In this document: in pieces, positions 392 through 28,700 of the stretch | How the letters are laid out: each line of letters starts with the position of its first letter | How positions within the stretch are numbered: the first letter of the stretch is position 1 | NCBI GenBank assembly: GCA_000708835.1 | Contig: DF237719.1 | Span: 1-34,607, forward strand | DNA length: 34,607 nucleotides | From: Klebsormidium nitens | Lineage: Eukaryota > Plantae > Klebsormidiophyceae | Direction of reading: 5' to 3' | Made by a program: the position numbers and the translations under genes | The notes under the pieces: model-generated | Databases searched by the model: none | Told to the model about the DNA's origin: nothing | What the model saw: only the letters and a program-made list of their open reading frames with translations

Positions 392-3300
392 ATGGTACGG
401 CAGCTCGCTTCCCTTTTATTTCAACTGAATGCTGCTGTTGATGTGCTGCCGGGCATAGGCGATGATGAGCCTTCGAGCACTGTGCCCGTCACTTCTGAGG
501 TTCCTTATTGTTGTTTGCAGTGTCCTGAGCCATAAAAGCTTTTGTGCGGTGTATTCTTTATGTGTTGCCAAACAACGATTGCAATTGAATCGGCGTGTTG
601 TGCTTGTGCGAAGGACGAAGCTTGAAGCTTATGTTGTTCTGCAGGCTGCGTTAACTTCATGTTGCAAATTGCTCAGAAGAATTGAGGATTGATTTGCTTG
701 TTTCTCTGCAGGCAACTCTTGCTGATTCCTTCCTGGCGGATCTGGAAGACCTGTCCGACAATGAAGAAGGGTCTGAGGTAAGCACACTTTTTTGGTTTCC
801 GTGAAACATTCTCTTTGAGCCCCAAACACAAGGCTTTGACATTGCTGATTAGCCCATCTGTTCCGCAAGGTTGTGCTCGCCCCTCCAAATCTCGGTAGGA
901 TTGAGCAAAGAAACTTCAAACATGTTCTGTGATGCCTCATCATACTTGGCAAAAGCAGCAAGCATTAAGCACAGGTCTGTAAGTGGTGGTACCACGGTTT
1001 GTGCTCGGGAATGTGCTTGAGAGGTTGAATGCGCTCATCTTGATCTCTGCATTGCTGCCATCAATTGAGGATCATCGTCAATTCGTCAATTCGTTGTGCA
1101 GGAAGAATTGGAGGTCCCAGGGGATGCTATGGAGGAGGACCACGGCGAGGAAGAGAAGGACCTCGAGGCAGTCAATCCTGATGACCTGGACTCAATTGCA
1201 AAGCTGCAGAAGGGGGAAAGATACAACCGGGTCCTGAGGGTAAGCACTGAAGGCCCCCTGTTCATCAGCTGCGGGCGCAGGCTGGAATATTGTTTGAAGC
1301 TCTTCTCTCTTTTTCTAGCCATGCTAGTATGATCAGGAGGTTGGAACACCAGCAACCACCAGCGACTTTTGGTGTCACCTTCATTCCTGCATCACCTGTC
1401 TCAAAACATTGACAAGCAGCATTCTGTGACATGCTGGTTCATGTGCCGCCACCCCGTGCAGAAGACTGCTTCAATCTCGCTTTGCATGGCAACCTTGACA
1501 ATTCCATCCACAGCATCGCATCATCTTTTGCTGAGTGTGCTCTGGTTCTGCAGGAGGTTGAGGCCGGCCTCGAGAAGGACGGGAGCAACATCGTGCGCGG
1601 GGTGGGGGTTGAGGACGACCCTGAGTACAAGCTGATAGTGGAGGGGAACCAGGTGATGGTGCAGATCGACAACGAGATTGGAGCCATTCACAACTTCATC
1701 CGGGACAAGTATCGCACCAAGCTGCCGGAGCTGGAGTCGCTCGTGCTGCACCCCATCGATTATGCCCGGGTGGTCAAAGCGATCGGGAACGAGATGGTGA
1801 GTAAAATTGAGCGTTTGGTTGTCCATGCCCCGATACTAAAAGATAGTGAGGCGGTTGAAGGGCATGAGTGAGGATTACACGATCCAACAGTGGTCTTACA
1901 AGTCTTGGCTGCGGTATCTTGTTTTATTCTGTTGGAAGCAGGATTGACTCGATTCATGTAGATTTGTTGACCAAGACTATACACCGGGGGAAGCTTTGAA
2001 GTCCGGTTGAGGTCTCCACTTGCTCCAGCTGACAATTCGTTCCAAAGGGATGTCGCTAATATTCCTCTTTTTCTGACCTGTGTCAGCCCGCTTCCTTTTG
2101 CAGGATTTGACCCTAGTCGACTTGGAGGGCCTACTCCCGTCTGCCACCATCATGGTGGTGTCAGTTACGGCTTCCACCACCAGCGGCAAACCGTTGACGG
2201 ACGAGGTCTACCAGAAGGTGATGGACGCATGCAACAGGATACTCGACCTGGATGCGGCCAAAAAGAAGGTGAGCAACATCAAGACATTGCGATGCGACCT
2301 TCTCTTGAGAATGAATCCTCTTTCTTCGACCGCCAATCTCGTGGTTGCACTCTTCCGTCCAACGAGCAGGCCATGTCTGATTCAATATTTTTGTGACTTC
2401 GACCACCAACAGGATAGCATGCGAAATTCGGCGCAGAATAGTGCTCAGTCGATCTTACGTATCTTCCGGCCCCAGAATCCAGGCCGAACCCTGAAACTGA
2501 TCGATTTGGACATCAATTACTTCTCTCTCTGTTCTTCTGTTTTCCGGCTCTTCCGAGGAACGCTCAGAGAGTCCTTCGCTCTTTTTGAAGAGTCTCTGAC
2601 CAACTCAAACCTGCTGTCGCAGATCCTCAAGTTCGTGGAGAGCCGCATGCTGTTCATTGCCCCCAACCTGTCCGCGATCGCGGGCAGCTCCATCGCGGCC
2701 CGGCTGATGGGCATGGCCGGGGGCCTCGGCGCGCTCGCCAAGATGCCGGCCTGCAACGTGCAACTCCTGGGGGCCAACCGGAAGAACCTCGCGGGCTTTT
2801 CGACTGCCACGCAGCTGCCGCACACGGGGCTCGTCTTCCACACGGAAATTGTGCAGCAGACGCCGCCCGCGCTGCGCATGAAGGCGGCGCGCCTCATCGC
2901 TGGTGGGTTGACTCGAACATCTCGTTTGTGCCCTTGGACCTCCACTCCGACTGCCGAATTGAGTGCTCTTGCGGGGTGCGGCTTTTGGTTGTTTGCACGA
3001 ACACTAACCTGGGAGGCTCGCAAAAAAAGCTGCCGTCCAATTCAGAAGTCTCCACTCGACCATCGCCGGTTGTATCTCGTATGCTGGATTCCTTCGGTCT
3101 TTCAGGTTCTGGTGGCTCCTGTACTTGTCCGTGTGGTTTGGTCGAGTAAGAGACAGTCTCTGCATGCGTACATCTTAGAGTGTTGGATATCTCTTTGCTG
3201 AATAGATGTACCTCGGGCTCAGGTAGTGTTGCAGCACCATAAAATCAAGTGGTAAGACGTCGGATTCAAGCGGTTGCCGTTTGCAGCTTGGCGTCGCTTT

Positions 3301-4343
3301 TTCAAAACTTGCTATTGGGTTCGGTCGGAAAAGATGATGCCTGAGGGACCTCTTTCCTTTCCATGCTTATCCTTAAGTGAGGAGGCTTTGTACACCTCTA
3401 ACGCTTTTGGCCCTCCTTCCTTGCAGGCAAGTGCACGCTTGCCGCTCGCGTGGATCACACCCTGGGCGACACGACGGGCGGGCACGGGCAGGCGCTGAAA
3501 GACGAGATCATGAAGAAGATAGAAAAGTGGCAGGAGCCGCCCCCGGCCAAGACGGCGAAGCCGCTGCCGGTGCCTGACGCAGAGCCGAAGAAACGGAGAG
3601 GAGGCAGGAGGATGCGGAAGATGAAGGAGAGGTAAGACACTTGTGAAAGCGGCAAAGCTGCTCGTATTTGCTGCTTCCTCCTTAAATTGTCGGGAGAAGG
3701 GGCGGGAATTGCAAGCAAAAGGTGTTCAGCAATGTCAAGTCGTGGGAAAGGGTTTGCCGGACGGTTACAAGGGGCTTACGATGGTCTCGAAACGGGCAAG
3801 GTTTGACTTAGGTCTACACCATGCTGTCATTCTTCGCCGATCTTCCTTGCTTAGTGCAGGACACCCTCTCTTTTGACTTCTGTGGCATTCGTGAAAGCTG
3901 TGTTAGGCAAAGGCGGTCTGGCGGGCGAATCTACGGCCTGGTATCCCTGCTTTTTGAGCTCCCGTTCCGCCCCTTGATGCAGGTACGCCGTCACCGAGAT
4001 GCGGAAGCTGGCCAACAGGATGCAGTTCGGTGTGGCCGAAGAGACAGACCTCGGCGCGGGCATCGGCGAGGGCTTCGGAATGCTGGGGCAAGCAGGGAGC
4101 GGGAGGCTGCGTGTGCAAGCGGCGCAGAGCAACCTCAAGTCGAAAGTCGCAAAGAAGTTTGCTAAGGAAAAGTCGTATGGTGGGGGTGGGGCCACGTCGG
4201 GCCTGTCGTCGAGTCTTGCGTTCACGCCTGTGCAAGGCATTGAGCTCGCGGATCCCTCGCAAGGGCGACGTGAGGCGCAGATCATGTCGGGGACTAGTTC
4301 GTACTTCTCCGAGACGGGAACTTTCTCCAAAGTAAAGAAGTAG
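392..4343 (+). CDS. PRP31: U4/U6 snRNP protein Prp31 (Nop-domain pre-mRNA splicing factor), 8 exons, 486 aa
   Basis: Exons are 392-394 (ATG only), 712-777, 1102-1239, 1554-1796, 2104-2268, 2623-2902, 3427-3631 and 3983-4343. All introns are GT-AG, phases are consistent, and the total is 1461 nt. The translation starts MATLADSFLADLEDLSDNE. It contains EDDPEYKLIV, IAPNLSAIAGSSIAARLMGMAGGLGALAKMPACNVQLLG, KKIEKWQEPPPAK..KPLPVP..EPKKRRGGRRMRKMKERY, MRKLANRMQFG and SGLSSSLAFTPVQGIEL, all hallmark Prp31 segments. Confidence 0.97.
458..531 (+). ncRNA. Candidate intronic box C/D snoRNA in PRP31 intron 1
   Basis: Box C ATGATGA at 462-468, CTGA at 495-498 (D') and 525-528 (D), and a short terminal stem GGC/GCC. 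There is no clear C' box and I could not confirm a target. Confidence 0.2.
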
Positions 4344-5115: not shown

Positions 5116-8100
5116 ATGGCTGCCCGCTCTGGTATCTCGTTACTCCGCAGCGCACTTGCCTGGCATCAAAGGTTAGCTCCAGATTTGATAGAAGCAGCCT
5201 GCTGTGGTGCACAGCAATCCGTTGATCGCTGCCGTTCTTTCTTTACTTCCAATCCACAATCAGCCGCCACTGAAGGCCCTGAGCCACCATCTATTTCGCC
5301 TTTGAAAGACAGAGGCCCTTACACGTCAAAGCTTACCAACCGCTCCGTGATTCACATTGATGGCCCCGACTGCATACACTTTCTGCAAGGTCTTGTGACC
5401 AACGACCTTGCTCACTTTGAGTCTGAGAAACCCCCCACAAGCTCTCTCCCAACGCCAAACCCCAGCCAGCCAGCAGCACAGCGGCCGCCAGTCTATGCTG
5501 CACTGTTGACACCTCAGGGGAGGTTCCTGTTCGACTTTTTCTTCTACAGGCCAGTAGAAGATCAGGAGAAACTTGACAGGGAAGGCACTGGGCCTGGCAA
5601 GGGGGAGACAGAGGGACTGTTTGCTGATGTCGATGCTGACACCAAGGACGAGCTTCTGCAAACCCTCAACAGGTGATACCGCATTTCGATGATAGGTGCA
5701 TGCAACCCCAGTGGAAAATTGCAATGGTGGCGTTAAGTTTCTCTTGAGAGATTCGTTCTGCAACACCCTCACTATGATACTGTTTTTGATTATGCTCACC
5801 ACAGCACGCATGCAAAGTTTAACGTCACCACTTGTTTCCGATGGGTTGTTACATGTCCTCGTAATATAGTATTTGTTTTGACAATCTGTTCAGACTGTGA
5901 AATCAAAGTTAAGTTAGATTCTTGTGGGACTGTTTGTAGGACTCAACAGTCAGCTTTGTGAGAAGTTTGCATACGTCAGCTGAATCTGGATCAGACCTCA
6001 GTGTGATCCTCACCCAGGGAAGAGACGTGCTATACCTCCACCTGAAGTTTGAATCAGCCTGTAGAGACATCTCCATCTCAGCGTTTTGGCTTGTCTCACA
6101 GGTACAAGCTGAGGGCCAACGTAGGAATCCAAGACGTCTCCAAAGACTTTACTGCTTGGGCGCGGTACGGCGGTGCGGTCTCCGAAAATCCAGAGGAGGG
6201 GTTTGAAGCAGAAGCTGGGGCGATAGGCTATGGGGGTACCACTGATAGGGCGGGGATGGTAGCTGCTGAAGCGGAAGGGGGGGGCTGGAGATGGGCCAAG
6301 GATCCAAGACTGGCTGAGCTGGGGCTGCGGGGGATCTTTGAGAGTACAGGTATACGTAAGCACTAAACTGCAATCTGGATTTCTGTTACCCTAAAGCGAA
6401 GCGCAAAGATTGGTAGATTTCTGGCAGATTCTTATGAAGTTCGTGCTCTTGCTGCAACAGGAATAGTGCTAGGAGCTGTGCTGTTTTGACGCTGTTCCTG
6501 CTTTTGTCCCTAAAAAACTTACTGTGGCTGTTTATGTGTTAAAACAGGGCTGACAGACAGCCACTCCTGAATTATGCCAACGCTATGATGGGGCTTCAGC
6601 CTGAGCGGCCAATAAAGTCAGGGCTGCATGGGGCACTTCGTAATTCCAGCTCGAATGAATGGTGTAGCCAACCTGTTCCACTTTGGCAATGAGAGGTGTA
6701 ACAGTAGGATGGGGAACGTCGAAGCACCCCAGCATTTCTGTATCAACCACGGAGGGCTTCGTCAGTACGTACTGTGTGACCGGTGAATTTGCCTTAGCCT
6801 CCGATTCAGTCTGAACCTGTTCGCTGGACAGAATTCCATGAGTACGCAGGACAGCCTGTTGTTCTTCTGTAATCCCATCTGTATATACAGACCAACCGCA
6901 AACATACTTGCCTCTTCCTGGCCTCGTCCTGTTTTGACTTTCTTTCGTGGATGGCAGCAAAAGTTGGTAACCTTTTGAGGAAATTTCAGGAAATCCACAT
7001 TGGTCGAACAATGTGCCTTCTGCTGTTTCCATCTCAATGAGGCAAGCCAGAACGACAGGTATTGATGTTCATCCTGAATCTGCTTCTGCAGCCCCGCTAG
7101 TAGAAGCTGACGGAGAAGTGGACAGCCGATACTACCGGCTGTGGCGATACGAGCACGGGGTCCCGGAAGGCCCCTTTGAGATCCCGAAAGGTGCGTCACC
7201 ATCAATCCGATCCGCCAGTGTCTATGTCAAGCAGCTTCAAGGATTTGCAGCTTCATCTCGTTGATCCCTTGATAGGGAAAAGACCAAAGTCAAGTCAAAG
7301 TCATTACGTGCCAGCGGTCCTTAGTTCTGCACGAAAATTTAAAGGGTACCAGGCGGACTTGGGAGCTCGCAGAAGAGATAAATCTGCCTACTTCACATGG
7401 GCTCAGGAACATGTCAGGAACATCGGGAATCGCTGTTGGGTCGTATTGCAGGGAACTTTCCTCACACAAGGTCATTGCCGGATGGCAGTGGTAGAAGTTC
7501 TCGGTGCTTTCGTTTGTTGATTGATCGGGTAGAATAAGGTGGGTATGGACAGGATCACTCACATGGCAGAAACTTCGAGAAAAGAGTTTGAAGTGGGCGA
7601 CAGTGGTTGCCGCTCTAATCAGCACGTTTACCTCGTCTGCGCTTTCGAAGCTGGTATGTCAGCGACTCGTTTCGAAGCTGTTATTTCAGTGATTCATTCA
7701 ATGCGGGTGGTTCGACGCCCGACTTCTACGGGCCTCCAGCCTTACAGATGTCGCAAATGATCCCTGCAGGGGAGGCGATCCCTCTGGAATATAACCTGGA
7801 TGGCTTGCACGGCATCAGCTACGAGAAAGGCTGCTATGTCGGACAGGAGCTCATCGCGCGGACGCACCACAAAGGTGTGGTTCGCAAGCGGGTGTTCCCC
7901 GTTGTCTTTGGCGAGGGTACTCAAGAAGGTGAGGGGGTCTCTTAGCTGCTGGTTTGAGGAAAGGTGTTGTTGAATGACTGGCTGGTAATTCGTACGACAA
8001 AAGTTGGCTGACATGACCATTGTGAGCATTGGTGCCTCAGTTGAGCATCGGTCCTCTGGTTAAAACAGGGACGAAGTCTTGTGGACGTGAGCAGCTCAAT

Positions 8101-8684
8101 ACGTTAAGCATCTGGTTCGATACGTTCAGCTCAATACGTTAAGCATCTGGTTCGATACGTTCAGGACGCATACCTGCCGGCCTTTCACCGGGATAGCCTT
8201 GTTCTTGAGTCGACTTACCGTCTTCGACCGGGATAACTTTGATCTCGAGTCGCTTATCGTCTTCGAGTATTCTAGTTGAAGCTTTGTAAGCTTCGGAAAT
8301 GAAGAAGCACGAAGACGACGCTGGTTAGTATACAGGATCACCCGTTTGCCAAACTTATTACTTTGCTACGTCATGAGAGTTCTTTTGAGGACTGGCGCTT
8401 CCTTGCGGTTATTGCCGTAGCTTCCAGAACGAAGATAGACGAAGATCATCTGCCGTTTTGCAGCCGATGATCAGTACGTCCCTCCCGGTTCCGAGATCGT
8501 CGACAAGCAGTCGGGGAAGAAGGTCGGCAAGGTGACAGCGGCACTGGGCTCAAGAGGTCTTGCTCTTCTGAGGCTAGAGGCAGCGCTGAAAGAGGGCGCA
8601 AAGCTAGAAGTCAAGGGTAAGTGTGAGCTTAAAGCGATTCGGCCTTCGTGGTGGCCTCAAGAGTGGGGTCGAGAAGAGGCTTAG
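5116..8684 (+). CDS. IBA57: Mitochondrial Fe-S cluster assembly factor IBA57/CAF17 (YgfZ/COG0354 family), 5 exons, 429 aa
   Basis: Exons are 5116-5672, 6102-6355, 7092-7190, 7770-7928 and 8464-8684 (1290 nt). The N-terminus is Arg/Ser/Ala-rich and presequence-like. Family segments present are [51 protein letters not shown], the signature [15 protein letters not shown], and a C-terminal [11 protein letters not shown]. Confidence 0.96.
6583..7032 (-). CDS. Possible nested antisense gene (149 aa) inside IBA57 intron 2
   Basis: An uninterrupted ATG-to-TAG ORF lies wholly within intron 6356-7091. Its composition looks globular and alpha/beta ([23 protein letters not shown]; [24 protein letters not shown]). 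No homology was confirmed, and an ORF of this length can arise by chance. Confidence 0.3.
8092..8164. repeat. Perfect 35-bp tandem duplication in IBA57 intron 4
   Basis: CAGCTCAATACGTTAAGCATCTGGTTCGATACGTT occurs at 8092-8126 and 8127-8161, followed by a partial CAG. Confidence 0.95.
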
Positions 8685-10033
8685 AAATGCATCCGGCAAG
8701 GATTCTGGGCGAGATCAGTTTGCGGGCTGCTGGAGAAGAGATCATCTCCTATGCACTTCCGGAGCAGCCTCTTTAATAAGGTTACGAAACCATACGGCTA
8801 TAAGCAAGGCCAACGTAGGGAGGTCTCAGAAAGACGATATGGTCAAAGATTGTAAAGAAGATGGCAAGCCTGTCAAACCCGGTCAGCTTCCGTTTAGACC
8901 GCATCTTGGAATATGCAGGGAGCATCTGCAGCCGCCATGTCAGACAAGTCATAAGGCTAGTTGTTGTGGTGTGGCACACAACAGCTGCAATTCATTGTTG
9001 ATCGTTCGCACGACTGTTTGTTGTAAGTTCGCGTTTGATTACGTGCCCTTTTCTTCCTTGACATTCCAGAATCGGGCGCCCCGTATGGCAAACCTTGCTC
9101 GAGCGTGCATTCAGATTATGTGCTGACGTTTTATGTATCATAGCCTATACCCGCGCTTCAAGATCTGGCACATGCGACGGCCGCTCGCCGGCTTCCAACC
9201 TATCCATATGCCCGGCCACCCACCCAGCTAGCTATAGATACGCAGGAGCCGCATGTGCCTATAGGCGATACACCTAGGCCGCGCCCGTCTGCTACTGCGC
9301 GCTGCCATATGCATGCATGGTTTGCAATCCATTTAATCTGCCTGCCGGTGAAAATCATCACCATGCAGTACTTCACATGATCCACTTATACAGACCAGGT
9401 GCATGAAAACCTTTAGTATAATGCATGTGCGATGTTTCCAATACTAACGAGTGGCAGATCGTTGGATCAGCACGATCTCACTATACTTGCGCGGTTTCCA
9501 AGATAGCGAGAATTATGTTTCCGTCCGAAGAATGCAACCGATCAGACGCTTGTTCCGTCTTCCAAGCTTAACATTAACCCTTTTCTTATCATATCTCAAG
9601 GCTCTTTGGCCGGGGCATCAGTGATCATATTCGCTGAAATTGCAAATCAGTGAACAATCATCATGCCATGAAGCAGACTGGACGCATATCGAATGGTCTG
9701 TACGTATTGCATTATGCATGACAGCAAGAATGATCGACTTCGCATGCGGTCTCTCACTGAAAGATATCATAGATTACTACAATAGTCCAGTTCAATGCGT
9801 TGTCGCCCTCGTCGTCCCTATGCAACATGCAGAGCAAAACTGTGTGTCAAGTAAGTACATGCAGTCCGGTCATATTTGCGCAGCTGGATGAGTGGCCCGC
9901 ACGTAACGGACCTTGTTGAAAGCCTCAGCATGCATGGGGCATACGATCCTCGCCAATGCAAAGACGCGTGCCATCGCGTCCTGAATAACGATCATGCATG
10001 CCAGTGAATGTCAGACCAACATATACGTCTACC

Positions 10034-12844
10034 CTAGGCGTTTGACATCCTTTGCTTGGCCTGCAGAAGCTTCTGGCAGGCCTTCTGCCACTTCCAAAGA
10101 GCCAGCCTCTGCCGCTCCTCTATCCGCCCCTCAACCGCGGCCTGCCTCCACGCTGCAAAGTACCCTGCCGCCGACCTCAGACTCCAGACCCGCATCGCAC
10201 GCTTCGCAAGGACGACGCGGCTCGTGCCAAGACCGTCCCGGCAGAACTCGTGCCACGATCGCCAAGCCCGGCTCTGCTCCGAGCTTCTCCACTGAGCAAC
10301 CGTCTGCCGCATCAGACGCCGGCTTTTCCCGTACTCATTACCTACCCGCAAAGCGAATCGGTATGCAGCCTCGACCTCTTCCAGCCGAACTAGAGTTGCG
10401 GCTTGTGAATTCCCCGCGCCCATGGGGCCTTCAACAGCAGACTTCCGGCACTGCCCAATCAACTCTTCTAGCGTGTTGATGCCAAGAGCGCCCAAGCATA
10501 CGTGCTCTTCCAACAGCGCTCGAGCGGGTGCTAATCTCGACTTTGGATGAAGACTCCACCACCGGTGCAGAATGACGAGAACCCCCACATCCACCGCACC
10601 GTCCGGGTCTACCGCCACTAGTCTATCTAACTCCGTCCGTTCCCTAACTAAACCCCGCAGATGGTCCAGCCGTTCCAGTAGCATCCCCAGAACGTTGCTC
10701 GCTAACCGCAGGTCTAGCTGCAAGAGAGTTAACAACACGCTTTCTAAGGAGGGGCAGGCGCTCTCGAGAAAACTCGAAACGGCGCCTTCCTCTCCGCAAC
10801 TCGACAACACTGTCAACCCTTCAACGACGAAGTCCGCCGTTTCCTTTGCTAGCCCCGAGCTTTTCTTTACGGAGGCCCAATCAGTACCACGGCTTGTAGC
10901 GTTCTTCAAAACTCGATCTTCTACGTGTCCTTCTCCGGCCTGCCCCGGCGTGGACAACAACGCACCATCTTCTCCGACTCTGAGCCGCTCGTCCAATGCT
11001 GGAAGTAGTGGGCCGACTTCATCGTTAGGGAAATTTCGACTGGAAACAAGCGCGCCTGCCACTGATCGCCAGAGCTCCCGAGCCGCCGGACTCTGACCCC
11101 CTCTTTCAAGCTCTTTCCCAACTGCAGCTGCGAGGCGTAACAGCGCTTCCTGTGACAGCTGGACCACTTCTAGGGCTCCCAGGTACGACCCAGCCTGAAG
11201 CGCCTCCGCGAGTTGCCGCCAATCCCACGCAGTGAAAGAGCCCGTGTAAGCCCACTCGAGCACGGCCCGAACCCCCGCTGCACTGCACTCCTCTCTTGAG
11301 ACGCACAGCTTAGTGGAGGGCCCCGAATGTACTCTACCATCCTCTACAAGGGGAATGGTCCGCTCGTCATCTTTCTGTGAGGCAAAGCGCACAGCGGCCG
11401 CGAAGTAGGGAACCCGTTGGCACACTATGCAGGCGTTTGCATATACCACTGCACTGCTGGCTCGATCAGAGCTCTGACTCCAACTTTTATGCTCTTCGCA
11501 ACCAGGGAGTTGCCGACTGCTTCCCAGGACTTCGATCACTATGTCACCGCCCTGCCTTCCTTGCAGATCCTCAAAGAGAGCGCCCAAGGACGTGGCGAGG
11601 AGCCCAAGGCCTGCCTGGCCTGAGGCGCTTCCTAGCGGGCCAATGGTTTGGGGGAAACTGTGGTTGATGGAGAATCTAGGCGAGGCTTGAAGGGGCGGGG
11701 CCTTGAGATCTTCAAGGGCTCGCTTCTCCTTCCATTGGCGAAGTAGGTTAGCTGCGGCTTCTCTCTGCTGCCTGCAGTTTCCAAACGGCCAGTCAGGGAC
11801 GAGGACTTCATACGTTATGCCCAATGACATGGCTATCGATGCAATCTGTTTGATACTCTTCCAGCGCCAAGGTCCTGAGTCAATGTAGCTCCTGCCTTGA
11901 GTTTCGTATTCTTCCCAAACTACATTGCAAGATGCTCATAGGCTGGTCTGGCCAAGACATCTCAGAGTCGTTTGAACCAGCCGGTTGGTATCAAGTGAGC
12001 AATCAAACTCTTAAGTCAGGAAGAGTCTGCACTGTACCTATGCTACAGAACAAATGCAATGCTGACCATCTCTGAGGGAAAGGGGGATCTTCCTGCCATA
12101 CCTGTAAACGGTCCAGCCACTAAGCGTTCTGCTGAGGATTCGGGCCCGCCACTGCCTCTGCGCCTGCAGCTCTGCTTGGCACTTTGCAAGCTGATGGTCT
12201 AGAAATGACCGCCTGGGAAGAAGAAAGTATAGAAATAATGCTGTGGCGCTTATAAGTGATGTGGGCGAAGTGGAGGTTTCTCTCTCTTGTAGAGCAAGCG
12301 CATCGGTCAGTTGGTCCCCAAAGAGGGGTCAGTCAAGGTTTGGCAGCCCCCCGGTTCAGTTAACATCGCCCCCAAACATGCTCTATAGCATTGTGAACTG
12401 GTCATCAAAGACGCTTGAAGGTGAGATGCTTGGGGCTTAAGAAAGTGCTCTTTTGGGGGTTTCAGTTCTTCTATCTTTCATAGAACGCGGCATGTGCGCG
12501 AAGTTGCTCAACAGTCTGCAAGAGCTAGCTAGCCTGGTGCAGTCCTTTCTTGGAAGTAAGATACTTTCTTTTACATTTTCAACGTTCCAGAAGTCCCTCT
12601 TTGAGATTGGAAGTAAAATACTTCTTTCACTTTTTCAAGGTTCCAGAAGTTCCTCTTTGACATTGTAAGTTCTCTTTGCTGTTTCCGCCCTTGGTTTGGA
12701 TGGTCTGCATACTTGATGGTTTGTGATGGCTTTTGACTTTCTTACTCACCATTGAATCCAGAAGACGGAGAGGGGGTTGCCGTGCATTCTCCATGCCCGC
12801 CATGCTTGTCGTACTGCTTCTTCAGAAGGAGGCTCCTCGTCCAT
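10034..12844 (-). CDS. BTB/POZ-domain protein with N- and C-terminal Sfi1-like Trp repeats, 3 exons, ~647 aa
   Basis: Exons are 12844-12750, 12212-12102 and 11771-10034, with GT-AG introns, both phase 2, for 1944 nt. The BTB core reads GDIVIEV...VVYANACIVCQRVPYFAAAVRF...AAGVRAVLEWAYTG...LAEALQAGSYLGALEVVQLSQEAL. The first ATG is uncertain, because an acceptor-like TTCCAG lies just upstream and a further 5' exon is possible. Confidence 0.8.
12550..12670. repeat. Imperfect ~57-bp tandem duplication in intron 1 of the BTB gene
   Basis: TTGGAAGTAAGATACTTTC...GTTCCAGAAGTCCCTCTTTGAGA (12550-12606) is followed by TTGGAAGTAAAATACTTC...GTTCCAGAAGTTCCTCTTTGACA (12607-12662) and a partial third copy, TTGTAAGT. 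Confidence 0.85.
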
Positions 12845-17742: not shown

Positions 17743-18486
17743 CGTCGTCAATAATGGTCCTTCCCTTAGCCCAAGTTGTAAAGAGAGCTTCATTAAGATT
17801 CTTTGTCTGGGACACACTATCCAGTCGGACTCCGTGGTTTTATGAGGTATAACAAACATCATGATCTGGAGTTGGGTGCTTTTCTTCGAAAAGCACAACT
17901 GCTGAGCAGGAAGAGGAGAATGCTTCTCCAACGACTGGGCCTTATATCTGGTGCTACGGTCTTGCATTTTTGTTGATATCCAAGCTTCATAAATCTTAGG
18001 CTTACAAATTACACTGCTCTCCATGTCTTTTCTTAGAATCGGCTCCTTTACAAATACCGCTGGCTTCGTGTGCGGGTTGATACTGCCTGACTCGTCCTGT
18101 ACGACGCTATCGCGCGCTACCAGCCGCAGGCCTTACGTGACCTGGGTGGGCCATGGAGCATAACCTGAAGTGTGCTGGTGCATGATCGCGATGGGCGCGG
18201 GCCGCGTCCACTGTCCGACCCAACGGTAGCGCCCGGGGTTCAGGGGTTTAAGGCAGGATCGGACGGTCAAAGGTGACCGTACGAGATCCGTCCGGACTCC
18301 GACGGTTATTGGTACCAGTTGGATCGACCGCTCGAAATGATTGTCCCCGTCTTGAAATCGACGTCAAGAGAGGTCCTCTTGACCTTCTGTGCGCGTACAG
18401 TTCATAGGTTGTATGGCGTTGAATGCAGCTAGGTTCTGCGACGGAGAACTTAAGCCTACCATTACCTATCTAATAAAGTAAGGTAG

Positions 18487-18575
18487 GTACCTACTACCAT
18501 GGGTACGGTAGTACGGTATGTACGACTACCGCCGCCGGTGTACCAGTGCCTATGTACATCCTAACAGTACCGTAC
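18487..18575. promoter_or_regulatory. Dense GTAC cluster (candidate SBP-box/SPL-CRR1 binding sites)
   Basis: Eight GTAC cores at 18487, 18503, 18511, 18520, 18540, 18554, 18567 and 18572, including GTACGG twice and CCGTAC once. The cluster lies ~400 bp upstream of the ATG at 18982. Confidence 0.4.
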
Positions 18576-18981
18576 GTGTGGCTACAGCTGTGACATGCAA
18601 GACTTTGCTCAAAGTCTCGTGCAGGACACTTGTAGGTACCTTGGCCGGGTGGCAGTTAACTCACACTACATGGTTTGTAAGTGCTGCATTCCTGAAGTGC
18701 GCCCGTGATCAATCTTTGTTTGTGCCCGTACCAACCAGATAGGCCGATACCGCCTACCTACCTAGATATGGTGGCGGCGTGCTTCTGAGTAGGAGTGTCT
18801 GAGAAGGAGTTCAAGCTCAGGATTGAAGAACAGGAGAAGGCTCGTTGCACCACCTTTGAGCTGTGAGGTTTTGTTGGAGCTGGTCGCTCTTTTCTTTACC
18901 CTTTTTGCCAAAATCCTGTCGCTCAAACCGGCCAAGGTCCTTCCCAGGCTGCTGCATGGCAATTCGCCAGCTGACGTAGCC

Positions 18982-21900
18982 ATGGCATTACTTCCACCCC
19001 CACCGCAGAGAGGGCAGCGCCTCAGCTTCCTGGGCACGTCATTGTGGACGCTGGACAGCGTGGACTCACTGATCCTTCCAAACGAGAGAAGAAAGTACGA
19101 GCAGCATTTTCACCAGCTAGACGCAGACCGAGATGGGTTTGTGCAAGGTGGGTCATTTGCAACCAAAGCTTCTACTTGTCTGTCTCTTGTCAGATTGCCC
19201 CCTAGACAAGCTAGATGCTCCACAGACTCTGTGTCATATTCTAGCTCTTGTGTGATCTCCCTTCTTGAAAAAGTATGATATGTGACAAAGCTGGCCAGTT
19301 AGGCAAGGATATCAGCTGACATTGAGCAATGTCGACCAGATTGGACCTGGTGAAAGATATGCTCTTTTGTTGGTCGTTGCCGAATATGGAGCTCAGACTG
19401 AGTTGGCATTTGGACTCAGACGCAACGCGTTGTGTTTGAAGCACCTTGTGGAAGGGTTTTAAAGCGTGCTCTTTACCGTGGCTAAACATCTACGCAGTCT
19501 TTTACCAAAGAAAATGGGCACTATAGTTACCCCATGCTGAGACCTGCATTTTGCCCGCCAGCTGACCACTTAGTAGAGTTCCATTTGTTTTGCCCGTCAC
19601 GTTCTGTGCTCCGCTTTCCTGGCCTGCCTTCACTTCCATTCAGGAGCCTGAGAAGTCGACTGTAACTGTTTTCTATCTTGTTGCAATTCTAGCCTGCTGA
19701 TGGCGCGATCTGGCCAAGCTCTTCAGGGATATCAATAAACCATCCGGCCCTCACAAATACTCCCCTCGCCACGCAGCTCCTGAGGGCAAGCACCTGCTCG
19801 CCCGCTCCAAAATCCCCGCGCGCATCATCGACGAGATCTGGGCCTTTTGCAACACGCCGCGCTCCTCGGGTCTCTCCTGCCGGGAGTTCACATGCGCCAT
19901 GCACCTCACCTTCCAGGCCATGCATGTGACGAGCTCCGCTTTGGGGGGCCAGCCCCAGCAGGCAAATGCGACCCCCCAAAGTGGAGAAACGAAGACGCCG
20001 GTCGTGCCTCCCCCTTGGTTGTTGGCGGCTCAGCAGGAATATAAGAGCAGTCAGATGGTGTCCCCTGTTACCACCCCCCCACCAAGAAAACCCAGTGTAA
20101 ATACCGCCCCTGGAGTGATCCAGCCCGCTAGTGACAAGCCAGAGAACTGGGAGAGGTTCTCCCCAACAGGGCCGGGAAGTGGGTTTTCAAATGTGGGCCA
20201 GGGTTTTGTGCCTGCAAACCAAGGTGTTAGCTTCGTCGGTAGCGGGTTAATAAGCCCGGAGGTCCTCCCGACACCCTGGGTTACGTTCGACTCCGGCGAT
20301 AACCACCGGCGCCTGAACCGGCACACGTCCATGCCAGAAAGCCAGCTTAACCCCGTCTGGTCAACAATGACCCAAAACCGGGGCTTCCGGGAACGACAGC
20401 CCTCGGGTCCGTTTGCACCGCAGCCTGCAATTTTCCAGGGGGGGCAAGAGCAAGCCTTTGAGAGGACCCTTTCCCCAGAGCCCAAGGACCCCCTGATAGG
20501 CACTCAGCCGGATATGATAAGCCAGCGGAGCGCTCGGTTGAGGCGGCGGCCAATGACGTACGAGATCGGGAAGCGCCAGCAGAAGCGGCGCACCCGTTCG
20601 TTGTACGGTACCCTAAGTGAGGACCTTACTTTGTATTCCGTGGAGAACAGCGATAGTGTGCAGATCAAAGGAGGGGCGCTCAGCCCAGTTCCCGAAATGG
20701 TCGATTCACTGCCCCCAGTCGCCGTAGAGGACACAAGCTCTGAGAATGTTACGGAATTTCAATCGCTCCAAGCGCAAACGAGCGCTGAGGCTGAGATCAA
20801 TAACCAAACTCCTCGGGCGCGAACAAGCAGCTTGACGGAGGCGAAGCCTTCCGGGCAGTCTCTGGAAAGCCAAGAGCATTTGAAGCAGAGCACCGAAATA
20901 CTAGAGGTCGTTGGGTTGACAAACAAGCTTCGGGAAGAAGAAGAGGTGCTGCAAAAGGAAATTGTAGAGGCAAGAGGCGAGGAGTCGGGGCTCCAGAAGC
21001 GGTTGGAAGAAGTGACGGCGGAGAAGAAGGAAGTGGAGGAAACAATTGGAAGGGGAAAGAACGAGCTGCAACAGCTGCGGTCGAATGTGGACGATCGACG
21101 AGCGGAGCTGACGCGACTGGAAGACGAGGTGGGTTTCTGGAGCTCTTAAGTTTTATGCTTCGTTTTGGGCTCTTCCCTTCTGTAATGGTTGTCTTTGTTT
21201 CTGTATTAGTTCCGGGGGCTCTTTGTTTCTTCTCTTAACTGTGGCCTGCAAAGTTCTTTCATGTTCGATTATGAGACAGGATCCGGCTCATGCGAATCGC
21301 AGAAGTCTGCGGGTTCCGTACTTCCAGCCTTTTGCATTGCCACGGGTTATTGTGTTCAGTCGCTTGGGTGCCATTCTGCAAGTCGACTTCTGAGCGCAAC
21401 TTGAGCTCGCGTCGAACGATGAAAAACTGACATACATCAAAATGGCAACTGCCGGATGATGAAGCGGGTCAAACATGTGCACTTTTGCCACAAGATTCAA
21501 GTGTCACGTATTTGCGAGAAAGCTACAACCAATAAAGCGCGAAACCCTGGTGCGCCAGGTCTGCTGCTTCGATCGCAAGCGGTTCGCGGACTGATAGTGC
21601 AGACCCAAAGAGATTGCAGGTTTGGATACTGTGATTGTTTTCAGAAGCGACTCCGGGCCACGTTGAGCTTACTTGCTCGCCAAGTGTACATCGAGTGAGC
21701 ACTAATATCGAAGCATCTTGTGTGAATCTGACACACATCATAAGAGCGAAATACAGATGGCGCATACGTTGACAGCCCACTCAATGTTGAAGGAACGTCC
21801 ATCAAGTGAAGGACCAATAGCTTGCTTACTCCCAGTACTTAATTCGCAGATGCACGATCTCAAGCGGAAGCGCAGTCAGCTTGATTCCGAGAAAGACAGC

Positions 21901-24900
21901 CTACAACTAGAGCTGGTGAACGCGGAAACGCTTCTGCGGGAGAAGCGCGAGCGGCTGGAAGCAGAACGGGCGAGGACTACGCAGGCGGAGGAGACGGTGG
22001 CAGCTCTCAAGACAAAGGTAGGTGCAAGTTGGGGCTGTAGTTTTAGATGCCAAACAAGGGACGTCCTTCTCATACAAGAAGTGACCGGAGATTGGCAGTT
22101 TGACCTTTGGTTTGTCCTTACAGAAGCATGCACTTGAGAGCCAGATTGCGGAGCAGAAGAACCAGAAGCGGCTCGAGAGGCAGGAGAGCAGGTCTCACTA
22201 TCGGGAGTGGTGTGGCGCCGATTGTGATCAGAACTTAGATCTGAGTCTTATAGTCGTTTTATGCTCGCAGAATACCTCTCAGCAATTGCCGTCCCCTTTT
22301 TTCCCTCAGTTGAGGTCTCATTCTAATCATGCCTTGCACCATTTTGCAGTACCTCGCGCAGTATCTGCGCAATGCTTAGGCACAACTCCCTATTCTTCGC
22401 GAGGTCAGCAGTTCGTTCTGGTCTCCCCTCCGTGCAGATGCAAGCGAGCACATCCGCCCTGAATGAGGTTAAGCCGACGGTTTACCCCCGACCGTTGAGC
22501 AAACCCGAATCAAAAACCGAGCCCCAACCGGCACCCGTTCCTTGGGCCCCTCTCGCCGTCCAAGTCCCCACCCTCTCTCCAACTTCCCCCTCCCCTGCCG
22601 ACGCGTCAACCAACCAGGCCGCGCCACGTGGCCCTATGAGCGGCACTCCGTTCTCCGCATTTGACGGGGAAGACCTCTTCAAACTAGAGGCGGAACTAGG
22701 GGAGGGCAGCTGCCGCCAGATGCTGGCGGAGGACCAGAGCCCCGGTTCGATGGGGTTCGTTTGGCCCGCGATCTCCCCCCCCGTCACGAGACTGCCTACC
22801 CTGGCCGTGAAGAAAGGTGCGCAGCCAGATGGAGGACACGTGGCGCCGATCCCAGCGCAGGCGCCTAATGAGGGAGAAGAAAATGAGCGCGAGGTGATAG
22901 TCGAGGTGAAGGCGCCTGCGAACAGCACGCCCAAGCAGACGGGGACACCGAAGGGGGGCATTTTGTCGCCCAAACGGCCCCCCCCGCCGCCGCCGACGAA
23001 GGTCCCCACTGCAGCCCCGGCCGACGCGGTCCCCGCAGCCGCGGCCGCAGCCCCCGCCCTCCAAAACCCTCAAACCTCCCCCAGCAAGATGCGAAACAAG
23101 GCCGAGAGCGTGACGCTGGATTGGGCGAACGGCGAAGACTCGTGGCTGCACTTCGACGATTCGCCGCCGCTCGCTGGCCTTCCCGGCGGAAGCCCGCTCT
23201 TGCCCGACGTCGTCGTTGCTGAGGTCAGCATCCCGTCCGCTGACGTCAACCCGGTTCCGCTCAGCGCCGCGTACCTTTCCGCGAAGGTCCACCCGGAGCC
23301 GGAAGGCGGACCGCTTTCCCCTGACAGCCTCGCGGCGCCTTCCCCGAGCGTCAGATCGTTCCTTGGGGAACTCGCCAGTAGCGAGCGGGGACTGGTCACC
23401 GGGCAGAGCTTCTCGGCGACTGAGGGCCCTCAAAAACCCGCCTTTGCGTCGCTCGCAACATCATTATCCCCCTCAGTCCAGTCCTTCCTCAACGTCTCCA
23501 CTTTCCCCGCCGGCCCGCCGACCAGTCTACCGTCCGCCATTCCAGCAGCACTTGGCGGCCAGAACTTCCCCGTTGTGGGGGGGCAAAACTCGCCGTCTGC
23601 TCCGGGCTCCCCCGCGCAGTTCAAGACCCCCCTGCGGAAACCGCCGCCTCCTCCGTCCGGCCTGAAAAAGACGGGGGGGGCCGAAACCCCAAACCCCGCG
23701 ACCCCAAACCCCGCGACCCCGAATACCGCGGTGCAAGATGCGCCTCCGGGGCAACTAGTCTGGGCGGAGTTTGGCGACGCGGAACAGCAGAAAGCCCCCG
23801 CTTCTGCTGCCCCGACCGCAATATCTTCCGACGGCACACCGTCAACGGGGTTCGCAAAGTTAGGGGAGCCGTTAAGCCCGTCTTCGGACCTTTTCATGAA
23901 AGTGGGGGGCTTGGGCGCACCCGCAAAGCTCCCCTCCGAATGGACAGCCCTGCGTCCGAATCCGGTGTACGAGCCGAACGGGGGCGTCCGAAGGCGGCGC
24001 TCCTCGGACGGCGACCTCGTCCAGGAAAAGAAACCGCCCCTGGTCGCCGAGCCCGAGCCGAAACTGCCCGCTTCAGAACCAACAGCCGCCCCAGCGCTTG
24101 CACACGCTCCCGCCGCTGCATCACAGACTGTGACGTCACAAAGCGTGACGTCACCAGGTGTGACGTCGCAGCCGACGTCACCCGACTCGAGCCGCATGAA
24201 CTTGCTGGAGGACGACTGGTTTCTGGCGAGTGGCCAAACGCCCACCAGTCCCTCCGCGGTTGCTCAAAATGCGGTCGGGGATGCCAACCGGGGTTCCGCT
24301 TCCGCTGGGCTCCGGCCACTCACTGAAGCGGACCGGAAGAAGTGCACGGCGGCTTTCGAGAAGATTGCGCGTCCGGGCAGGGAATTTGTCTCCCGGACGG
24401 AGGCTGAGGGGATATGCAGCCGGGCAAACATTCCGGGGCAGCCCTTTGAGAGACTCTGGTGAGTCAGCAGTGCGAACTGTGACAGACCGACTGTGAAGAA
24501 TATGTTTCTTTCGTATTGCTGAGGTGACTTCGGTTTTAGACTTTGCAAGGGTCTTACGAGTAAGTTGTGATCATGAATGCATGAACAATCGCGTAGAAAA
24601 TACAAGCCTGAAGCCTGCACATGCGTCAACGTATTGAAAGTTTTGATGCATATGTCGTGATAAGCTACGTCATTCCTCCATTCCGGATATTTCAATGTCG
24701 TCGGATGCAAATGCGCACTTGCCCCAAGCAAGCAGTACAGTTCCCGCACAAGTGCTTCCAACGTCTTACCAAAGCTATCTGCCGGACCTGAAAATTGACA
24801 AGGGTGACTTCAAACAAGTCTTTTGAATTCGATTGCAGGGCTCTGAGCGACCGGGCCGAGGACGGGGTCCTCGGCAAGGATGAGTTTTGCATCTTCCTCC

Positions 24901-27900
24901 TCCTCATGAAAGCGGCCGCCGCTCGGGAGCAGCTGCCCGGGGGGCTGTCCACCGGCGACGTCTCCCGCCTGCTCGGGCACGAGTTCGTCGCCGAGAAGAT
25001 CACCCGGAGCTTCATTCCGACCCCGGCAAAATCTTCACACGGGAGAACGCCGACCGCGGAAAGGGGGGGGTCTCCTGGCACAGATTCGGGCCCCCGGAAC
25101 GTCGTTCTGGGCGCCGATTTGGAAGTCCCCCCTGCGCTTTACAGCTCGCCCCCCCAGTTGGATTCTCCCACCGCTAGGGGTGATCTAAGCCCGGGGAAAA
25201 CGCCAGGACCCGGGGGAGAGGCCTGGGAGGATTACCTGGCGAAGCGGGTCGGTTCTGCGGAAGACAAACCCTCTCTAGCTAACGCTAACCCGACAGAGGG
25301 TTCGTTCGGCGACCAGTCCCCAAGCGTGTCCCGCATCCCGTCGCCCTCAAAGCGGAGCAGCCTTCCCGAGACTGGGGGGATCACCCCTGTTCAAGGCGGA
25401 AGCCCTCTGGTCCAAACCGTGCGCCCGCCGAGCGTCGTCGCCCGCCCGCTTTCCTCCCAGTCGTTCCGCTCCGCTTCCTTACGGATACGAGTTGGACCGG
25501 AAGACGAAGACCGCGAATCCGGTCGTTTTGTAGGGGAGCGCGTGCGCCGATTTAGCAGCCAGGAGGGGGGGATAGCGTATCTGGTGGGCATGGGTTTCGG
25601 CCCGAAGGCGGCCGCGGCCGCGACCGCGAGGTTTGGGAGCGATCTCCAAGCCGCCGTCGCGTGGCTGCTCGAGCAACCGGGCCGGGGGGTCGACCCGGCC
25701 GACGTGCTCGCGAGCGCGGACCGCGATCTGTTTCCGCTCACACCCCCTCCGGCGGAAAAGACAACCGCCCGGAACCTGTTGAACACCGAGCCGATCGCGA
25801 GCGACAGCCCGCCCGCGGGCCGCGGACTTGACAGTGCGCGCGCGAGGCGCCACGTGGCGGGCGGGGAGAGCAAGATCCCGAGCCCCCCCCGGAGAGACGG
25901 CAACAGTCCGAACGGTTCGCCGGTGAAAAAACCTACGGTTGTCAGTCCGAGCATGTTAAAACCGCCCGTAGAAAGCATGACGCCTCCATCCGAATCCAGT
26001 CTTAGAACGCCGGAAAGCCCCGAGAAGAAGTTCGAGCGGAATCCGTCGATCCTGGACCGGATCGGGGCGGCGGAATCGGACGGTTCGGACGAGGAAGAAG
26101 AGGTGGTGGTTGGGACGGAAGTCGAACGTCCGCAGAGCGCCCGGCCGCCCGGGTCGCCGCTGAGCCAGATGATTGGCAGTCTGTGGGGGGCAGGCAAGAC
26201 CGCGCCCGGGACCCCCACGGGGCAGACAAAGATCGAAAAGGGCCTCGTCGCACACAACGTGGAAAAGTGAGCGGGCGAACATCTTTTTCTTCTTCTGAAT
26301 CCTGTTTTTCCCTTGTTGTAGGTCAAGAAACGATGAGCACCAGCAACCTATTGAAAGGTATTCCGCCACGTTTCTGGAGGGAACGGCAAGGCGCCTGACG
26401 CGATCCTTGCCTGCTAATTAGCGGCGACTTCTTTCCATTAAAATTCGAATGCACGACTCCATTAAGAATCTAGCCAATTGGCTCCTTCCATACTGACAAG
26501 TTTTGTTCAGATGCCGGACACCGATTATCAGCAAATTACGCAGGAAGTGGTCAGGCGCAAAACCTAATCCTTTTGGAGATGACATTGAACTCTCTAGTGA
26601 GTTGTTACGGAGGGTCTCCCACCTCCTTGCTGCGGCCGGGGTTGAACGGAAAGAAGAAAGATCAACATCTTTCTCCAACATCTTTGTCATCACTCTCCGC
26701 CCTCGTCCCGCAGGTTCGAGAAGGGGGCCGCGGCCAACTGCGGTCCGCGCTTCGTAACGCAGCTGCCGGTACAGCTGCTGATTGAAGAAGTGGCGCTTGA
26801 GGACGCCGACGACCTCCGGGACCCCTTTATCACCGTTGCCGTCTATGGTGAGCCGTCCGCAACCGTCCGATTTGCCTTAAGGACGTCCGCAACCGTCCAG
26901 TTGCCCGCAACCGGCTGCCCATCCAATATAGCCGTCGGCTAGCTTTCCACATGAAAACAAGGCGCCCACACCCCTGAATCAGACTTCAAAATCATTGCAA
27001 CCATCCAGTTTTGATTCCAGGTGTAGTTGAAAACTTAAAAGGCCTTTTTCAGAGGGTATTTTCGTCCCCAGGCATTCCGTATCTTTCCGGGTCTTGCAGA
27101 CAGTGTTCCTTTCTTCCAGCTTTTCTTTAGCTCAAAACAGGAACACGCGTGTCTGCATGAGAAGCTCAAGCCTCCATATAACGGTTTGCGTCTGGGGTGG
27201 CAACCAGCTTCAGCGCACCTCATGCTGACGTCCCTGCCGTGCAGACGAGTCGGGCGCCTTGATAGAGCCCGCGCAGAATACCAGCATCGTGTCAAACGCC
27301 GATGAGCGGGGCATCGTCTTTGGGACGCGTGTTGACATCCTGGGGAAAATCCCGGCAGTGCCGCCGTCAGGTGAAAATAGCCCCCCGAACATTTTTCATG
27401 CAACGTAGAACATCTTCAGAGTCTGGTGAAGGTTGGAACTTGCTGAATTTTTTCTTTCTCCTATCTCATGTTCAAGGATATTGCACTTCTCCCTAGCTCT
27501 GCTTGCTGATCCACGTTGTTTGGAGGGAGCCTTTCCACTATTAGGAGGTTTGCAGATGAGTTCTCAAGCTTGATGACAGACCTGAAACGGAAGCAGAAAC
27601 GACTGAAATCAGTATCCGACAATCCGACCATAGAAGACGAACCGAATCCGGTGAAATCGACCGTTGATCATGCCTTACCTTCCAATTTGGAAGAACTTTC
27701 CTACGCTCTTTGGGTGGTATTTTGCCTTCGGTCGGCTTCTCAAAAATATATCAGGTCGTCTGTATTCATTGGGAACTATTACGGTACGCAGGAACGAAAG
27801 TGTGCTTCGAGGTGCGGCACTTCAAGCGGGGCGAGACGAGCAAAGCCAGCACCAAGTGCTGGACCGCCATTAACCTGGAGGAGATGGCGACCGGGCCCCA

Positions 27901-28245
27901 CACGCTCGTGCTGTAAGCGTCGCCTGACTGACTTCCCGGTTCAAGCCGGAAGTTCGGGCTTTTCTGCAATCTGCTGTTGTGAGATGATTAGGAACGTTAC
28001 GTGCAATATTATTGCTGGTTCGCGAGGAGGGATGGAGTCAGTGCAACTCATGAAGAAAACGGCGAGAGGTGAAAAACTGTAAAGGGAGAAGGTTCTAAAG
28101 CCCCAAGTGCCATGTCGCACCGGTTTCTGATCTTCTGTGCTTTTCGTGCAGGTTCAAGAAGCCCGTCGACCTCAAGGCAAAGCGGGCAAAGCTCCTGAAC
28201 GGCAAGCGGGACGTCCTCAAAATCAACGTAGACTTCCAAGAATGA
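18982..28245 (+). CDS. Eps15-homology (EH) scaffold with coiled coil, second EH domain, UBA and C-terminal AIDA-type C2 domain, 11 exons, ~1933 aa
   Basis: Exons are 18982-19147, 19777-21128, 21850-22017, 22124-22191, 22350-24458, 24839-26266, 26322-26357, 26714-26847, 27245-27370, 27792-27912 and 28152-28245 (5802 nt, phases consistent). EH1 is ERRKYEQHFHQLDADRDGFVQAPEGKHLLARSKIPARIIDEIWAFC..REFTCAMHL. EH2 is DRKKCTAAFEKI..FERLWALSDRAEDGVLGKDEFCIFLLLM. The UBA is IAYLVGMGFGPKAAAAATARFGSDLQAAVAWLLE. The C2-Aida is LLIEEVALEDADDLRDPFITVAVY..FEVRHFK..STKCW..LFKKPVDLK. The exon 4 donor (GTCTCA) is weak. Confidence 0.85.
23686..23730 (+). repeat. Exonic 15-bp tandem repeat x3 encoding TPNPA
   Basis: ACCCCAAACCCCGCG twice, then ACCCCGAATACCGCG. 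Confidence 0.85.
24130..24180 (+). repeat. Exonic 15-bp-period repeat encoding VTS(Q/P), each unit containing GACGTC
   Basis: GTGACGTCAC at 24130 and 24145, GTGACGTC at 24160, and GACGTCA at 24174. Confidence 0.8.
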
Positions 28246-28700
28246 GTCACGTCCGATTTCGTCATCGTGGTCCGTCATCATTTAAATCAGAACACATGCT
28301 TCTTTCTGATCGGCGGTTGGATAGGCTTGTTCTTCACTGGAACAACCCCAGGTGTTGTAGCAGAGGACTGTTATGAACATATCTGAATAATGTGGCACCT
28401 GTGAGGTGTTGGCTGGATCGCACTCGTGAACCCCACATTTTAATCACTTCTGCAGAAAGCACATCCACTGCCCAGCATGCTTAACTTGGACCTGGTACGA
28501 ACGTCCCGATCCCTTGATTGCCCAAGAGCAAGAAATTTTGCCATGTCCGTGCCTGGGCGTACGGTCGGATGCAGCGACAACAATTTTGGCATGCAAAAGA
28601 ATCGTGTGTAAAGTATAGCGGATCGATTAGATTGTGAGCCGGCTCGAAGCCCTTGGAAGTCGACAATACCCAATTAAGATGGTTGTTCAAAGCTTTGCAC

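Follow-up and report, generated by a model that had tools for sequence, protein, structure and literature searches.

A multi-exon gene on contig DF237719.1

The window analysed here is a stretch of 34,607 nucleotides (nt) from the alga Klebsormidium nitens (contig DF237719.1, positions 1 to 34,607 of the forward strand, assembly GCA_000708835.1). Its + strand contains a multi-exon gene extending from an ATG at 18982 to a stop codon at 28243–28245, with introns that are all GT-AG and in phase. A first-pass annotation made from the DNA letters had described the product as an EH – coiled coil – EH – UBA – AIDA-C2 protein, and these elements were indeed found in one expressed and conserved frame, the second EH domain scoring weakly. 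This is a genuine gene, both spliced and expressed, and it is conserved. The best model consists of nine exons totalling 5,610 nt and encodes 1,869 amino acids (aa). Its exons are as follows.

18982–19147, + strand: exon 1, start codon and N-terminal half of the first EH domain (EH1)
19777–21128, + strand: exon 2, C-terminal half of EH1, a disordered stretch and the start of the coiled coil (~20859)
21850–22017, + strand: exon 3, coiled coil
22438–24458, + strand: exon 4, Pro/Ala/Ser-rich region of ~625 aa, then the N-terminal half of EH-like domain 2 (EH2; ~24319–24458)
24839–26266, + strand: exon 5, C-terminal half of EH2 (24839–~24955), linker, UBA (25575–25679) and conserved pre-C2 linker
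26714–26847, + strand: first C2 exon, AIDA-C2 strands 1–2 with the DPFITV motif
27245–27370, + strand: second C2 exon, an Aida_C2 profile match with RNA joints on both sides
27792–27912, + strand: third C2 exon, the best-conserved part of the whole gene
28152–28245, + strand: last C2 exon, basic tail KKPVDLKAKRAK, then the stop codon at 28243–28245

The same gene, exon for exon, was present on three contigs from relatives, namely L001 (84 kb, from a Joint Genome Institute (JGI) metagenome) and L002 and L003 (both from Logan assemblies). Exon 1 opens at the first in-frame ATG downstream of a stop at 18790 and ends at a GT donor; the ATG is found at the same place in L001 and L002. Exon order and all junction phases were kept in L001, L002 and L003, including the phase-2 donor AA/GTGAG (the slash marks the exon end) with which exon 24839–26266 ends before the C2 exons.

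The stretch was contained in 19 public runs from seven studies, the best of which held 0.53–0.66 of its words. This share fits the exon fraction. Contigs of four runs (four studies), all labelled only as guessed RNA, were mapped on 22450–28449; as they lacked introns, their source can only be spliced RNA. These contigs contained the GT..AG joints 24458>24839, 26266>26714, 26847>27245, 27370>27792 and 27912>28152. Joint 26266>26714 was present in all four runs, at the highest contig depth, and 27912>28152 was also seen in four runs. RNA contig sequence covered 22450–24457 and was spliced to the exon beginning at 24839, and a single contig of 6,407 nt ran from upstream of 22450 to 28365, passing through the EH2/UBA exon and the C2 exons. 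The 3' untranslated region (UTR) extends to at least 28436, with contig ends at 28365, where adaptor sequence follows, and at 28436.

With 26266 spliced to 26714, an AAG codon is completed and the frame continues, while the unspliced frame reads AAG TGA and stops immediately (TGA at 26268). The first-pass annotation had joined the C2 exons to the EH/UBA gene, and transcripts from four studies bear this out by connecting 26266 to 26714 in frame. The immediate stop after a retained intron, together with low-depth intronic contigs such as 26385–26652, would fit two genes, the first encoding EH and UBA and terminating at TGA 26268 and the second encoding the C2, joined only in read-through or chimeric assemblies. 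However, four studies share the identical in-frame GT..AG joint, for which contig depth was highest, the phase-2 donor and acceptor are retained in relatives, and the residues beside the junction are strongly conserved. Moreover, the C2 exons contain no in-frame ATG ahead of the middle of the C2 domain, which leaves no way of making the C2 as a protein of its own. The missing ATG and the spliced joint rule out a standalone C2 gene, and the two-gene arrangement, which we consider highly improbable, is already contradicted.

The donor AA/GTGAG precedes the C2 exons in all four taxa (window 26264–26272; L001 ~11290–11300; L002 ~7898–7908; L003 ~4128–4138). Because of this conserved donor, intron retention would end the protein one residue further on and yield a C2-less EH-CC-EH-UBA isoform (CC, coiled coil). 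The intronic contig 26385–26652 had a depth of 3.7 compared to 18.4, and the low-depth intronic contigs may represent either pre-mRNA or such an isoform.

Nine of the eleven in-phase exons listed in the first-pass annotation stand, one of them with its acceptor moved from 22350 to 22438, whereas 22124–22191 and 26322–26357 fail. Its product of ~1933 aa also counted the mini-exon 26322–26357 (+ strand, 36 nt); keeping only exon 22124–22191 would give 1,921 aa. The RNA contigs of all four runs (four studies) go straight from 26266 to 26714, skipping the mini-exon and contradicting the joints 26266>26322 and 26357>26714 that had been drawn on either side of it. The mini-exon also lacks a counterpart in L001, and its size leaves the frame the same whether it is included or not.

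The choice between joints 22017>22438 and 22191>22350 was made by conservation, the RNA contigs having been mapped on 22450–28449. An acceptor is found at the equivalent of 22438 in L001, L002 and L003, and conservation begins exactly there; upstream of this point there is no conservation, and in-frame stops occur in L002 and L003. The previously proposed joint 22191>22350 is not conserved; the acceptor at 22438 is. Exon 22124–22191 (+ strand), paired with acceptor 22350, is probably not an exon, with no match in L001 or L002. The DNA around it could not be aligned with the relatives, and it is phase-incompatible with the conserved acceptor at 22438; the direct joint 22017>22438 is in frame. 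Alternative small exons were enumerated, and none was convincing.

At the 5' end, 2,351 nt of the 6,407-nt contig lie upstream of 22450, which places ~653 nt ahead of the ATG at 18982, or 497 nt if exon 22124–22191 is counted (window ~18330–18981). This sequence is either a long 5' UTR or contains unrecognised upstream exons; given the in-frame stop at 18790, contiguous DNA is unlikely to encode an N-terminal extension.

Domains of the encoded protein

Pfam was scanned exon by exon. Aida_C2 (PF14186), for which the curated cutoff is 25 bits, matched all four terminal exons, and the matches were colinear, covering profile positions 13–38, 42–75, 83–118 and 121–145 of 146. Scores were 12.2 bits for 26714–26847, 13.4 bits for 27245–27370, 28.1 bits for 27792–27912 and 17.5 bits (E 0.0033) for 28152–28245. 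Only 27792–27912 exceeds the cutoff by itself, reaching 31.4 bits in the context of its open reading frame (ORF). No other C2 family matched the terminal exons in the Pfam scan. When 177,635 distinct PDB sequences were searched, the solved AIDA C2 chains 2qzq/2qz5 were the sole matches of exon 26714–26847 (residues 16–40) and of exon 27792–27912 (residues 86–118), while 27245–27370 and 28152–28245 had no match. In the ESM Atlas, the named clusters nearest to 27792–27912 were Aida_C2, chlorophyte members included.

These results agree with the first-pass annotation, which had read the peptide of the last four exons as a C2 domain like that of animal AIDA: each of the four exons matches Aida_C2, one passes the scoring check alone, and the AIDA segments given in that annotation agree with chains 2qzq/2qz5 in alignments. 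The N-terminal helical domain of AIDA had been proposed to be replaced in this gene. No exon matched an Aida_N-type domain at E up to 10, and EH, coiled coil and UBA are encoded upstream instead. From profile and PDB sequence matches we conclude that the gene is predicted to encode a complete AIDA-type C2 domain, at ~aa 1713–1869.

EH1 is split by an intron. Its first half, in exon 18982–19147, gave weak EF-hand matches and has the canonical EF-hand loop DADRDGFVQ, and the half in exon 19777–21128 matched positions 31–79 of the Pfam EH profile (E 0.0023). The conserved Trp of the NPF pocket is present in DEIWAF. The best solved relative was the third EH domain of Eps15 (1c07, E 0.009), and intersectin and REPS1 EH structures also matched. 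The coiled coil occupies ~aa 417–562, with Pfam coiled-coil families matching 20859–21128 and 21850–22017. Exon 21850–22017 encodes neither Pro nor Gly and gave a Filament match (E 4.7e-5) as well as ATG16-type coiled-coil matches. Hydrophobic residues at heptad positions a and d were enriched in both parts (0.50 vs 0.27 overall in the exon 19777–21128 part; 0.69 vs 0.32 overall in exon 21850–22017).

The exon from 22438 encodes ~673 aa, of which 16% are Pro, 13.5% Ala and 11% Ser. It contains no NPF motif. Within its disordered region, otherwise 55–77% identical, sit short motifs that were conserved: FSAFDGEDLF, SDLF, SWLHF-acidic, R/K-x-PPPPP (twice) and DDWF were kept in all four taxa (22438–24458), and W-x-x-F-G-D/E and RRRRSSDGD in three of four, with no match in L003. 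Motifs of the DLF/DLL and L-phi-x-phi-[DE] types bind clathrin, WxxF-acidic motifs bind the AP-2 alpha appendage, and R/KxxPxxP motifs bind SH3 domains. On this basis, the conserved motifs would be of clathrin-, AP-2- and SH3-binding kinds. RRRRSSDGD (~23991–24017) is a conserved basophilic phosphorylation-type site, and RRFSSQE (25545–25565), identical in L001, lies immediately before the UBA; both may be regulatory sites.

EH2 is interrupted by the intron between 24458 and 24839. The 24839 half matched EH profile positions 48–73 with an E value of 0.033 in the window and 0.2 in L001. By eye EH2 fits the EH pattern, including ERLW and DG-L-KDEF, and a PDB sequence search with its first half returned nothing useful. 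The UBA scored 28.0 bits against UBA_7 on a 75-aa piece (cutoff 27) and 23.9 bits within the whole exon, and contains a GMGFG loop. An AlphaFold2 model of the UBA has helices at residues 16–25, 30–40 and 44–52 with a predicted local distance difference test (pLDDT) value of ~85 in the core. Its top Foldseek matches were all UBA domains (1wiv, 2g3q, 1wgn, 2dak and 1z96), all at E >0.1, as is expected for a domain of 40 residues. The second-best match was the UBA of Ede1, 2g3q, with a template modelling (TM) score of 0.75 on the target and a root-mean-square deviation of 1.7.

Conservation in related algae and neighbouring features

An exhaustive phmmer search of 1.84 billion representative proteins was carried out with the EH2-UBA exon (475 aa). 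There were two matches, P0001, which is the same exon from a related alga (67% identity), and an unrelated UBA protein. A word-indexed search added two further ORFs of this kind, P0003 (84%) and P0004 (69%). The contigs bearing P0001, P0003 and P0004 are the above L001, L002 and L003. As no relative of this exon from outside Klebsormidium-like algae was detected among the 1.84 billion representatives, the gene appears, by sequence comparison, to be confined to these algae. A word search with the 27792–27912 ORF produced no candidate; only proteins of 45–143 aa were visible to it, so this result says little. Technically limited scans of metagenome contigs with the 24839–26266 alignment and the 27792–27912 ORF alignment returned pattern matches only and no relative.

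Identity to the window was calculated for each exon. Values below are percentages of identical amino acids, and a dash means that the contig ends earlier.

18982–19147 (first half of EH1): L002 92; L003 –; L001 94
19777–21128: L002 74; L003 –; L001 53
21850–22017: L002 79; L003 –; L001 59
22438–24458: L002 77; L003 65; L001 55
24839–26266: L002 84; L003 70; L001 64
26714–26847 (C2): L002 93; L003 –; L001 77
27245–27370 (C2): L002 90; L003 –; L001 78
27792–27912 (C2): L002 100; L003 –; L001 100
28152–28245 (C2): L002 –; L003 –; L001 83

Exon 27792–27912 differed from L001 by 12 synonymous changes and no amino acid change, and for the C2 exons together the comparison with L001 gave a nonsynonymous difference (pN) of 0.079 and a synonymous difference (pS) of 0.63. 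No synteny of the flanking genes was found with L001. The conserved phases, the low pN/pS and the unshared flanks indicate that the fusion is old and under purifying selection, with the C2 under the tightest constraint. The intron leading into the C2 exons is longer in L002 (~1,150 nt, 7906–9052) than in L001 (~508 nt) or the window (447 nt), but has the same phase.

Elsewhere in the window, the ORF at 2080–3198 (+ strand) contains a Nop domain (PF01798, E 3.8e-43), which identifies it as a small nucleolar ribonucleoprotein (snoRNP) gene of the NOP56/NOP58/PRP31 type. A 598-aa ORF at 10034–11830 (– strand) matched no Pfam family at E up to 0.01. Several ORFs of 137–311 aa lie on the – strand between 22482 and 26369, antisense to the GC-rich (58–67% G+C) proline-rich exons. 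These look like a by-product of coding sequence with high G+C content rather than genes.

Proposed function and comparison with known systems

The most fitting reading of the protein is that of a variant Eps15/Ede1-type endocytic scaffold with an added AIDA-C2, a domain combination that we did not find described. The first-pass annotation had called this architecture undescribed. A literature search found no paper linking EH/Eps15 with AIDA-C2, and in this respect the claim held for the searchable literature; the architecture may nevertheless have been catalogued automatically in databases. We consider an early endocytic or sorting scaffold resembling Ede1 and Eps15 to be the most likely role, and give this assignment an even chance of being correct.

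We infer every binding activity and the cellular site in the following scheme. The protein would be a largely disordered scaffold of ~1,869 aa in which EH1 binds NPF motifs and possibly lipid, the coiled coil of ~150 aa allows self-association, and motifs in the ~625-aa Pro-rich disordered region recruit clathrin, the AP-2 appendage and SH3 domains. After this region comes a second, divergent EH-like EF-hand pair, and the UBA would gather ubiquitinated cargo. The basic surface of the C-terminal C2 could hold the scaffold at acidic or phosphoinositide-containing membranes, probably by calcium-independent binding. Together, EH domains, motifs and coiled coil might build a multivalent network that nucleates a coat.

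Several observations weigh against this proposal. The order EH-CC-EH differs from the EH-EH-CC of Eps15, Ede1 and AtEH/Pan1, and no orthology to any of these proteins was detected with the EH2-UBA exon in the 1.84 billion representatives. The half of EH2 encoded before the intron gave no EH profile match, leaving this domain weak overall. The short motifs are degenerate, and other binding partners are conceivable for them. Finally, the reported action of AIDA with HRD1 at the endoplasmic reticulum (ER) and the suggested ciliary role of AIDA-C2 mean that the site may not be the plasma membrane (PM).

The first of these two links raises the alternative that the same protein acts at the ER, at ER-PM contact sites or in selective autophagy, and not in coat nucleation. 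The C2 would then target ER-type membranes as in animal AIDA, with the UBA recognising ubiquitinated clients and the EH domains and coiled coil forming receptor condensates. Consistent with such a role, the UBA lies directly upstream of the AIDA-C2, plant AtEH/Pan1 proteins are reported to drive autophagosome formation at ER-PM contact sites (PMC6853982), and AIDA of animals works together with HRD1 at the ER, mediating the HRD1-dependent, ER-associated degradation of enzymes in the ER membrane (PMC10339828). However, the conserved motifs are of the clathrin/AP-2/SH3 type, and the AIDA N-terminal domain is absent, every exon being without an Aida_N match. Candidates for LC3-interacting region (LIR) motifs, one each in 19777–21128 and 22438–24458, had no equivalent in L001 and thus are not conserved. 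We regard this alternative as unlikely.

The second link concerns a ciliary, basal-body or centriolar scaffold that would serve zoospore formation. Zhang and Aravind suggested a ciliary or centriolar role for AIDA-C2 because its architectures and phyletic pattern fit cilia and centrioles, but they themselves state that direct evidence is missing (PMC3495828). Aida_C2 is also found on the tails of the heterokont myosin XXXI (PMC3942036). The cilia-free plant Arabidopsis has only six EH domains, all of them in EHD1, EHD2, AtEH1 and AtEH2, and therefore lacks the architecture (PMC8144573). On the other hand, RNA contigs for the gene were found in many cultures and studies, and nothing about EH, UBA or the conserved motifs points specifically to cilia. 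In our judgement a ciliary function is quite improbable.

Returning to the endocytic scaffold, Dergai et al. reported that outside the opisthokonts EH-EH-coiled-coil proteins are free of further globular domains. According to the same survey, Eps15 homologues of fungi and of animals acquired their UBA or UIM (ubiquitin-interacting motif) modules separately, ubiquitin recognition having appeared only in opisthokonts, twice (PMC4824007). An algal UBA and a membrane-binding C2 on an EH/coiled-coil scaffold would counter these survey statements and, if the proposal is true, would reveal a convergent coupling of ubiquitinated cargo, coat machinery and membrane. It is conceivable, if somewhat doubtful, that this scaffold, confined to a lineage of streptophyte algae, represents a third independent gain of a ubiquitin module by an EH/coiled-coil protein, following the UBA of fungi and the UIM of animals, and the first with an AIDA-type C2 as its membrane link. 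In that case, the plant lineage would have in it a natural 'all-in-one' protein for initiating ubiquitin-dependent endocytosis. The poorly understood AIDA-C2 would also gain a testable setting beside a ubiquitin reader, echoing the link of animal AIDA to the ubiquitin ligase HRD1. The apparent restriction of the gene to Klebsormidium-like algae limits its general importance.

Ede1 combines EH domains and a coiled coil with a C-terminal UBA, and Eps15 has UIMs instead. The window protein resembles Ede1 and Eps15/Eps15R in having one or more EH domains together with a coiled coil, in its long disordered region with short motifs, and in its C-terminal ubiquitin-binding module. It has one clear N-terminal EH domain, compared to three in Ede1 and Eps15; unlike both, it contains an AIDA-type C2 after the UBA and has neither NPF motifs nor DPF arrays. 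EH proteins with coiled coils studied to date act in clathrin-mediated endocytosis (PMC4824007), and Eps15 is reported to bind and bend membranes (PMC5007088). AtEH1/Pan1 and AtEH2/Pan1 of the land plant TPLATE complex share with the window protein the green lineage, high disorder, EH domains and a coiled coil, but their two EH domains are both N-terminal, and they have an acidic motif (PMC8144573). The same study agrees with the first-pass statement that AtEH/Pan1 proteins lack both UBA and C2, unlike the window protein (PMC8144573).

There are precedents for the position of the C2. One is the long isoform of intersectin, an EH scaffold that ends in a C2. The intersectin C2 is not known to belong to the AIDA family, and intersectin has SH3 and DH-PH domains in place of a UBA. 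The arrangement of that isoform is EH-EH-CC-SH3-DH-PH-C2 (PMC4824007). Myosin XXXI is a precedent for a C-terminal Aida_C2 on a large multidomain protein; this myosin has a motor but lacks both EH and UBA. Animal AIDA (2qz5, 2qzq) shares the C-terminal PF14186 C2 over profile positions 13–145, and the motifs DP[FY]ITV, F-E-x-[KR]-H-[FY]-K and STKC are common to both. Whereas AIDA is a small protein in which an N-terminal helical domain precedes the C2, the C2 of the window instead ends an EH/UBA scaffold of 1,869 aa.

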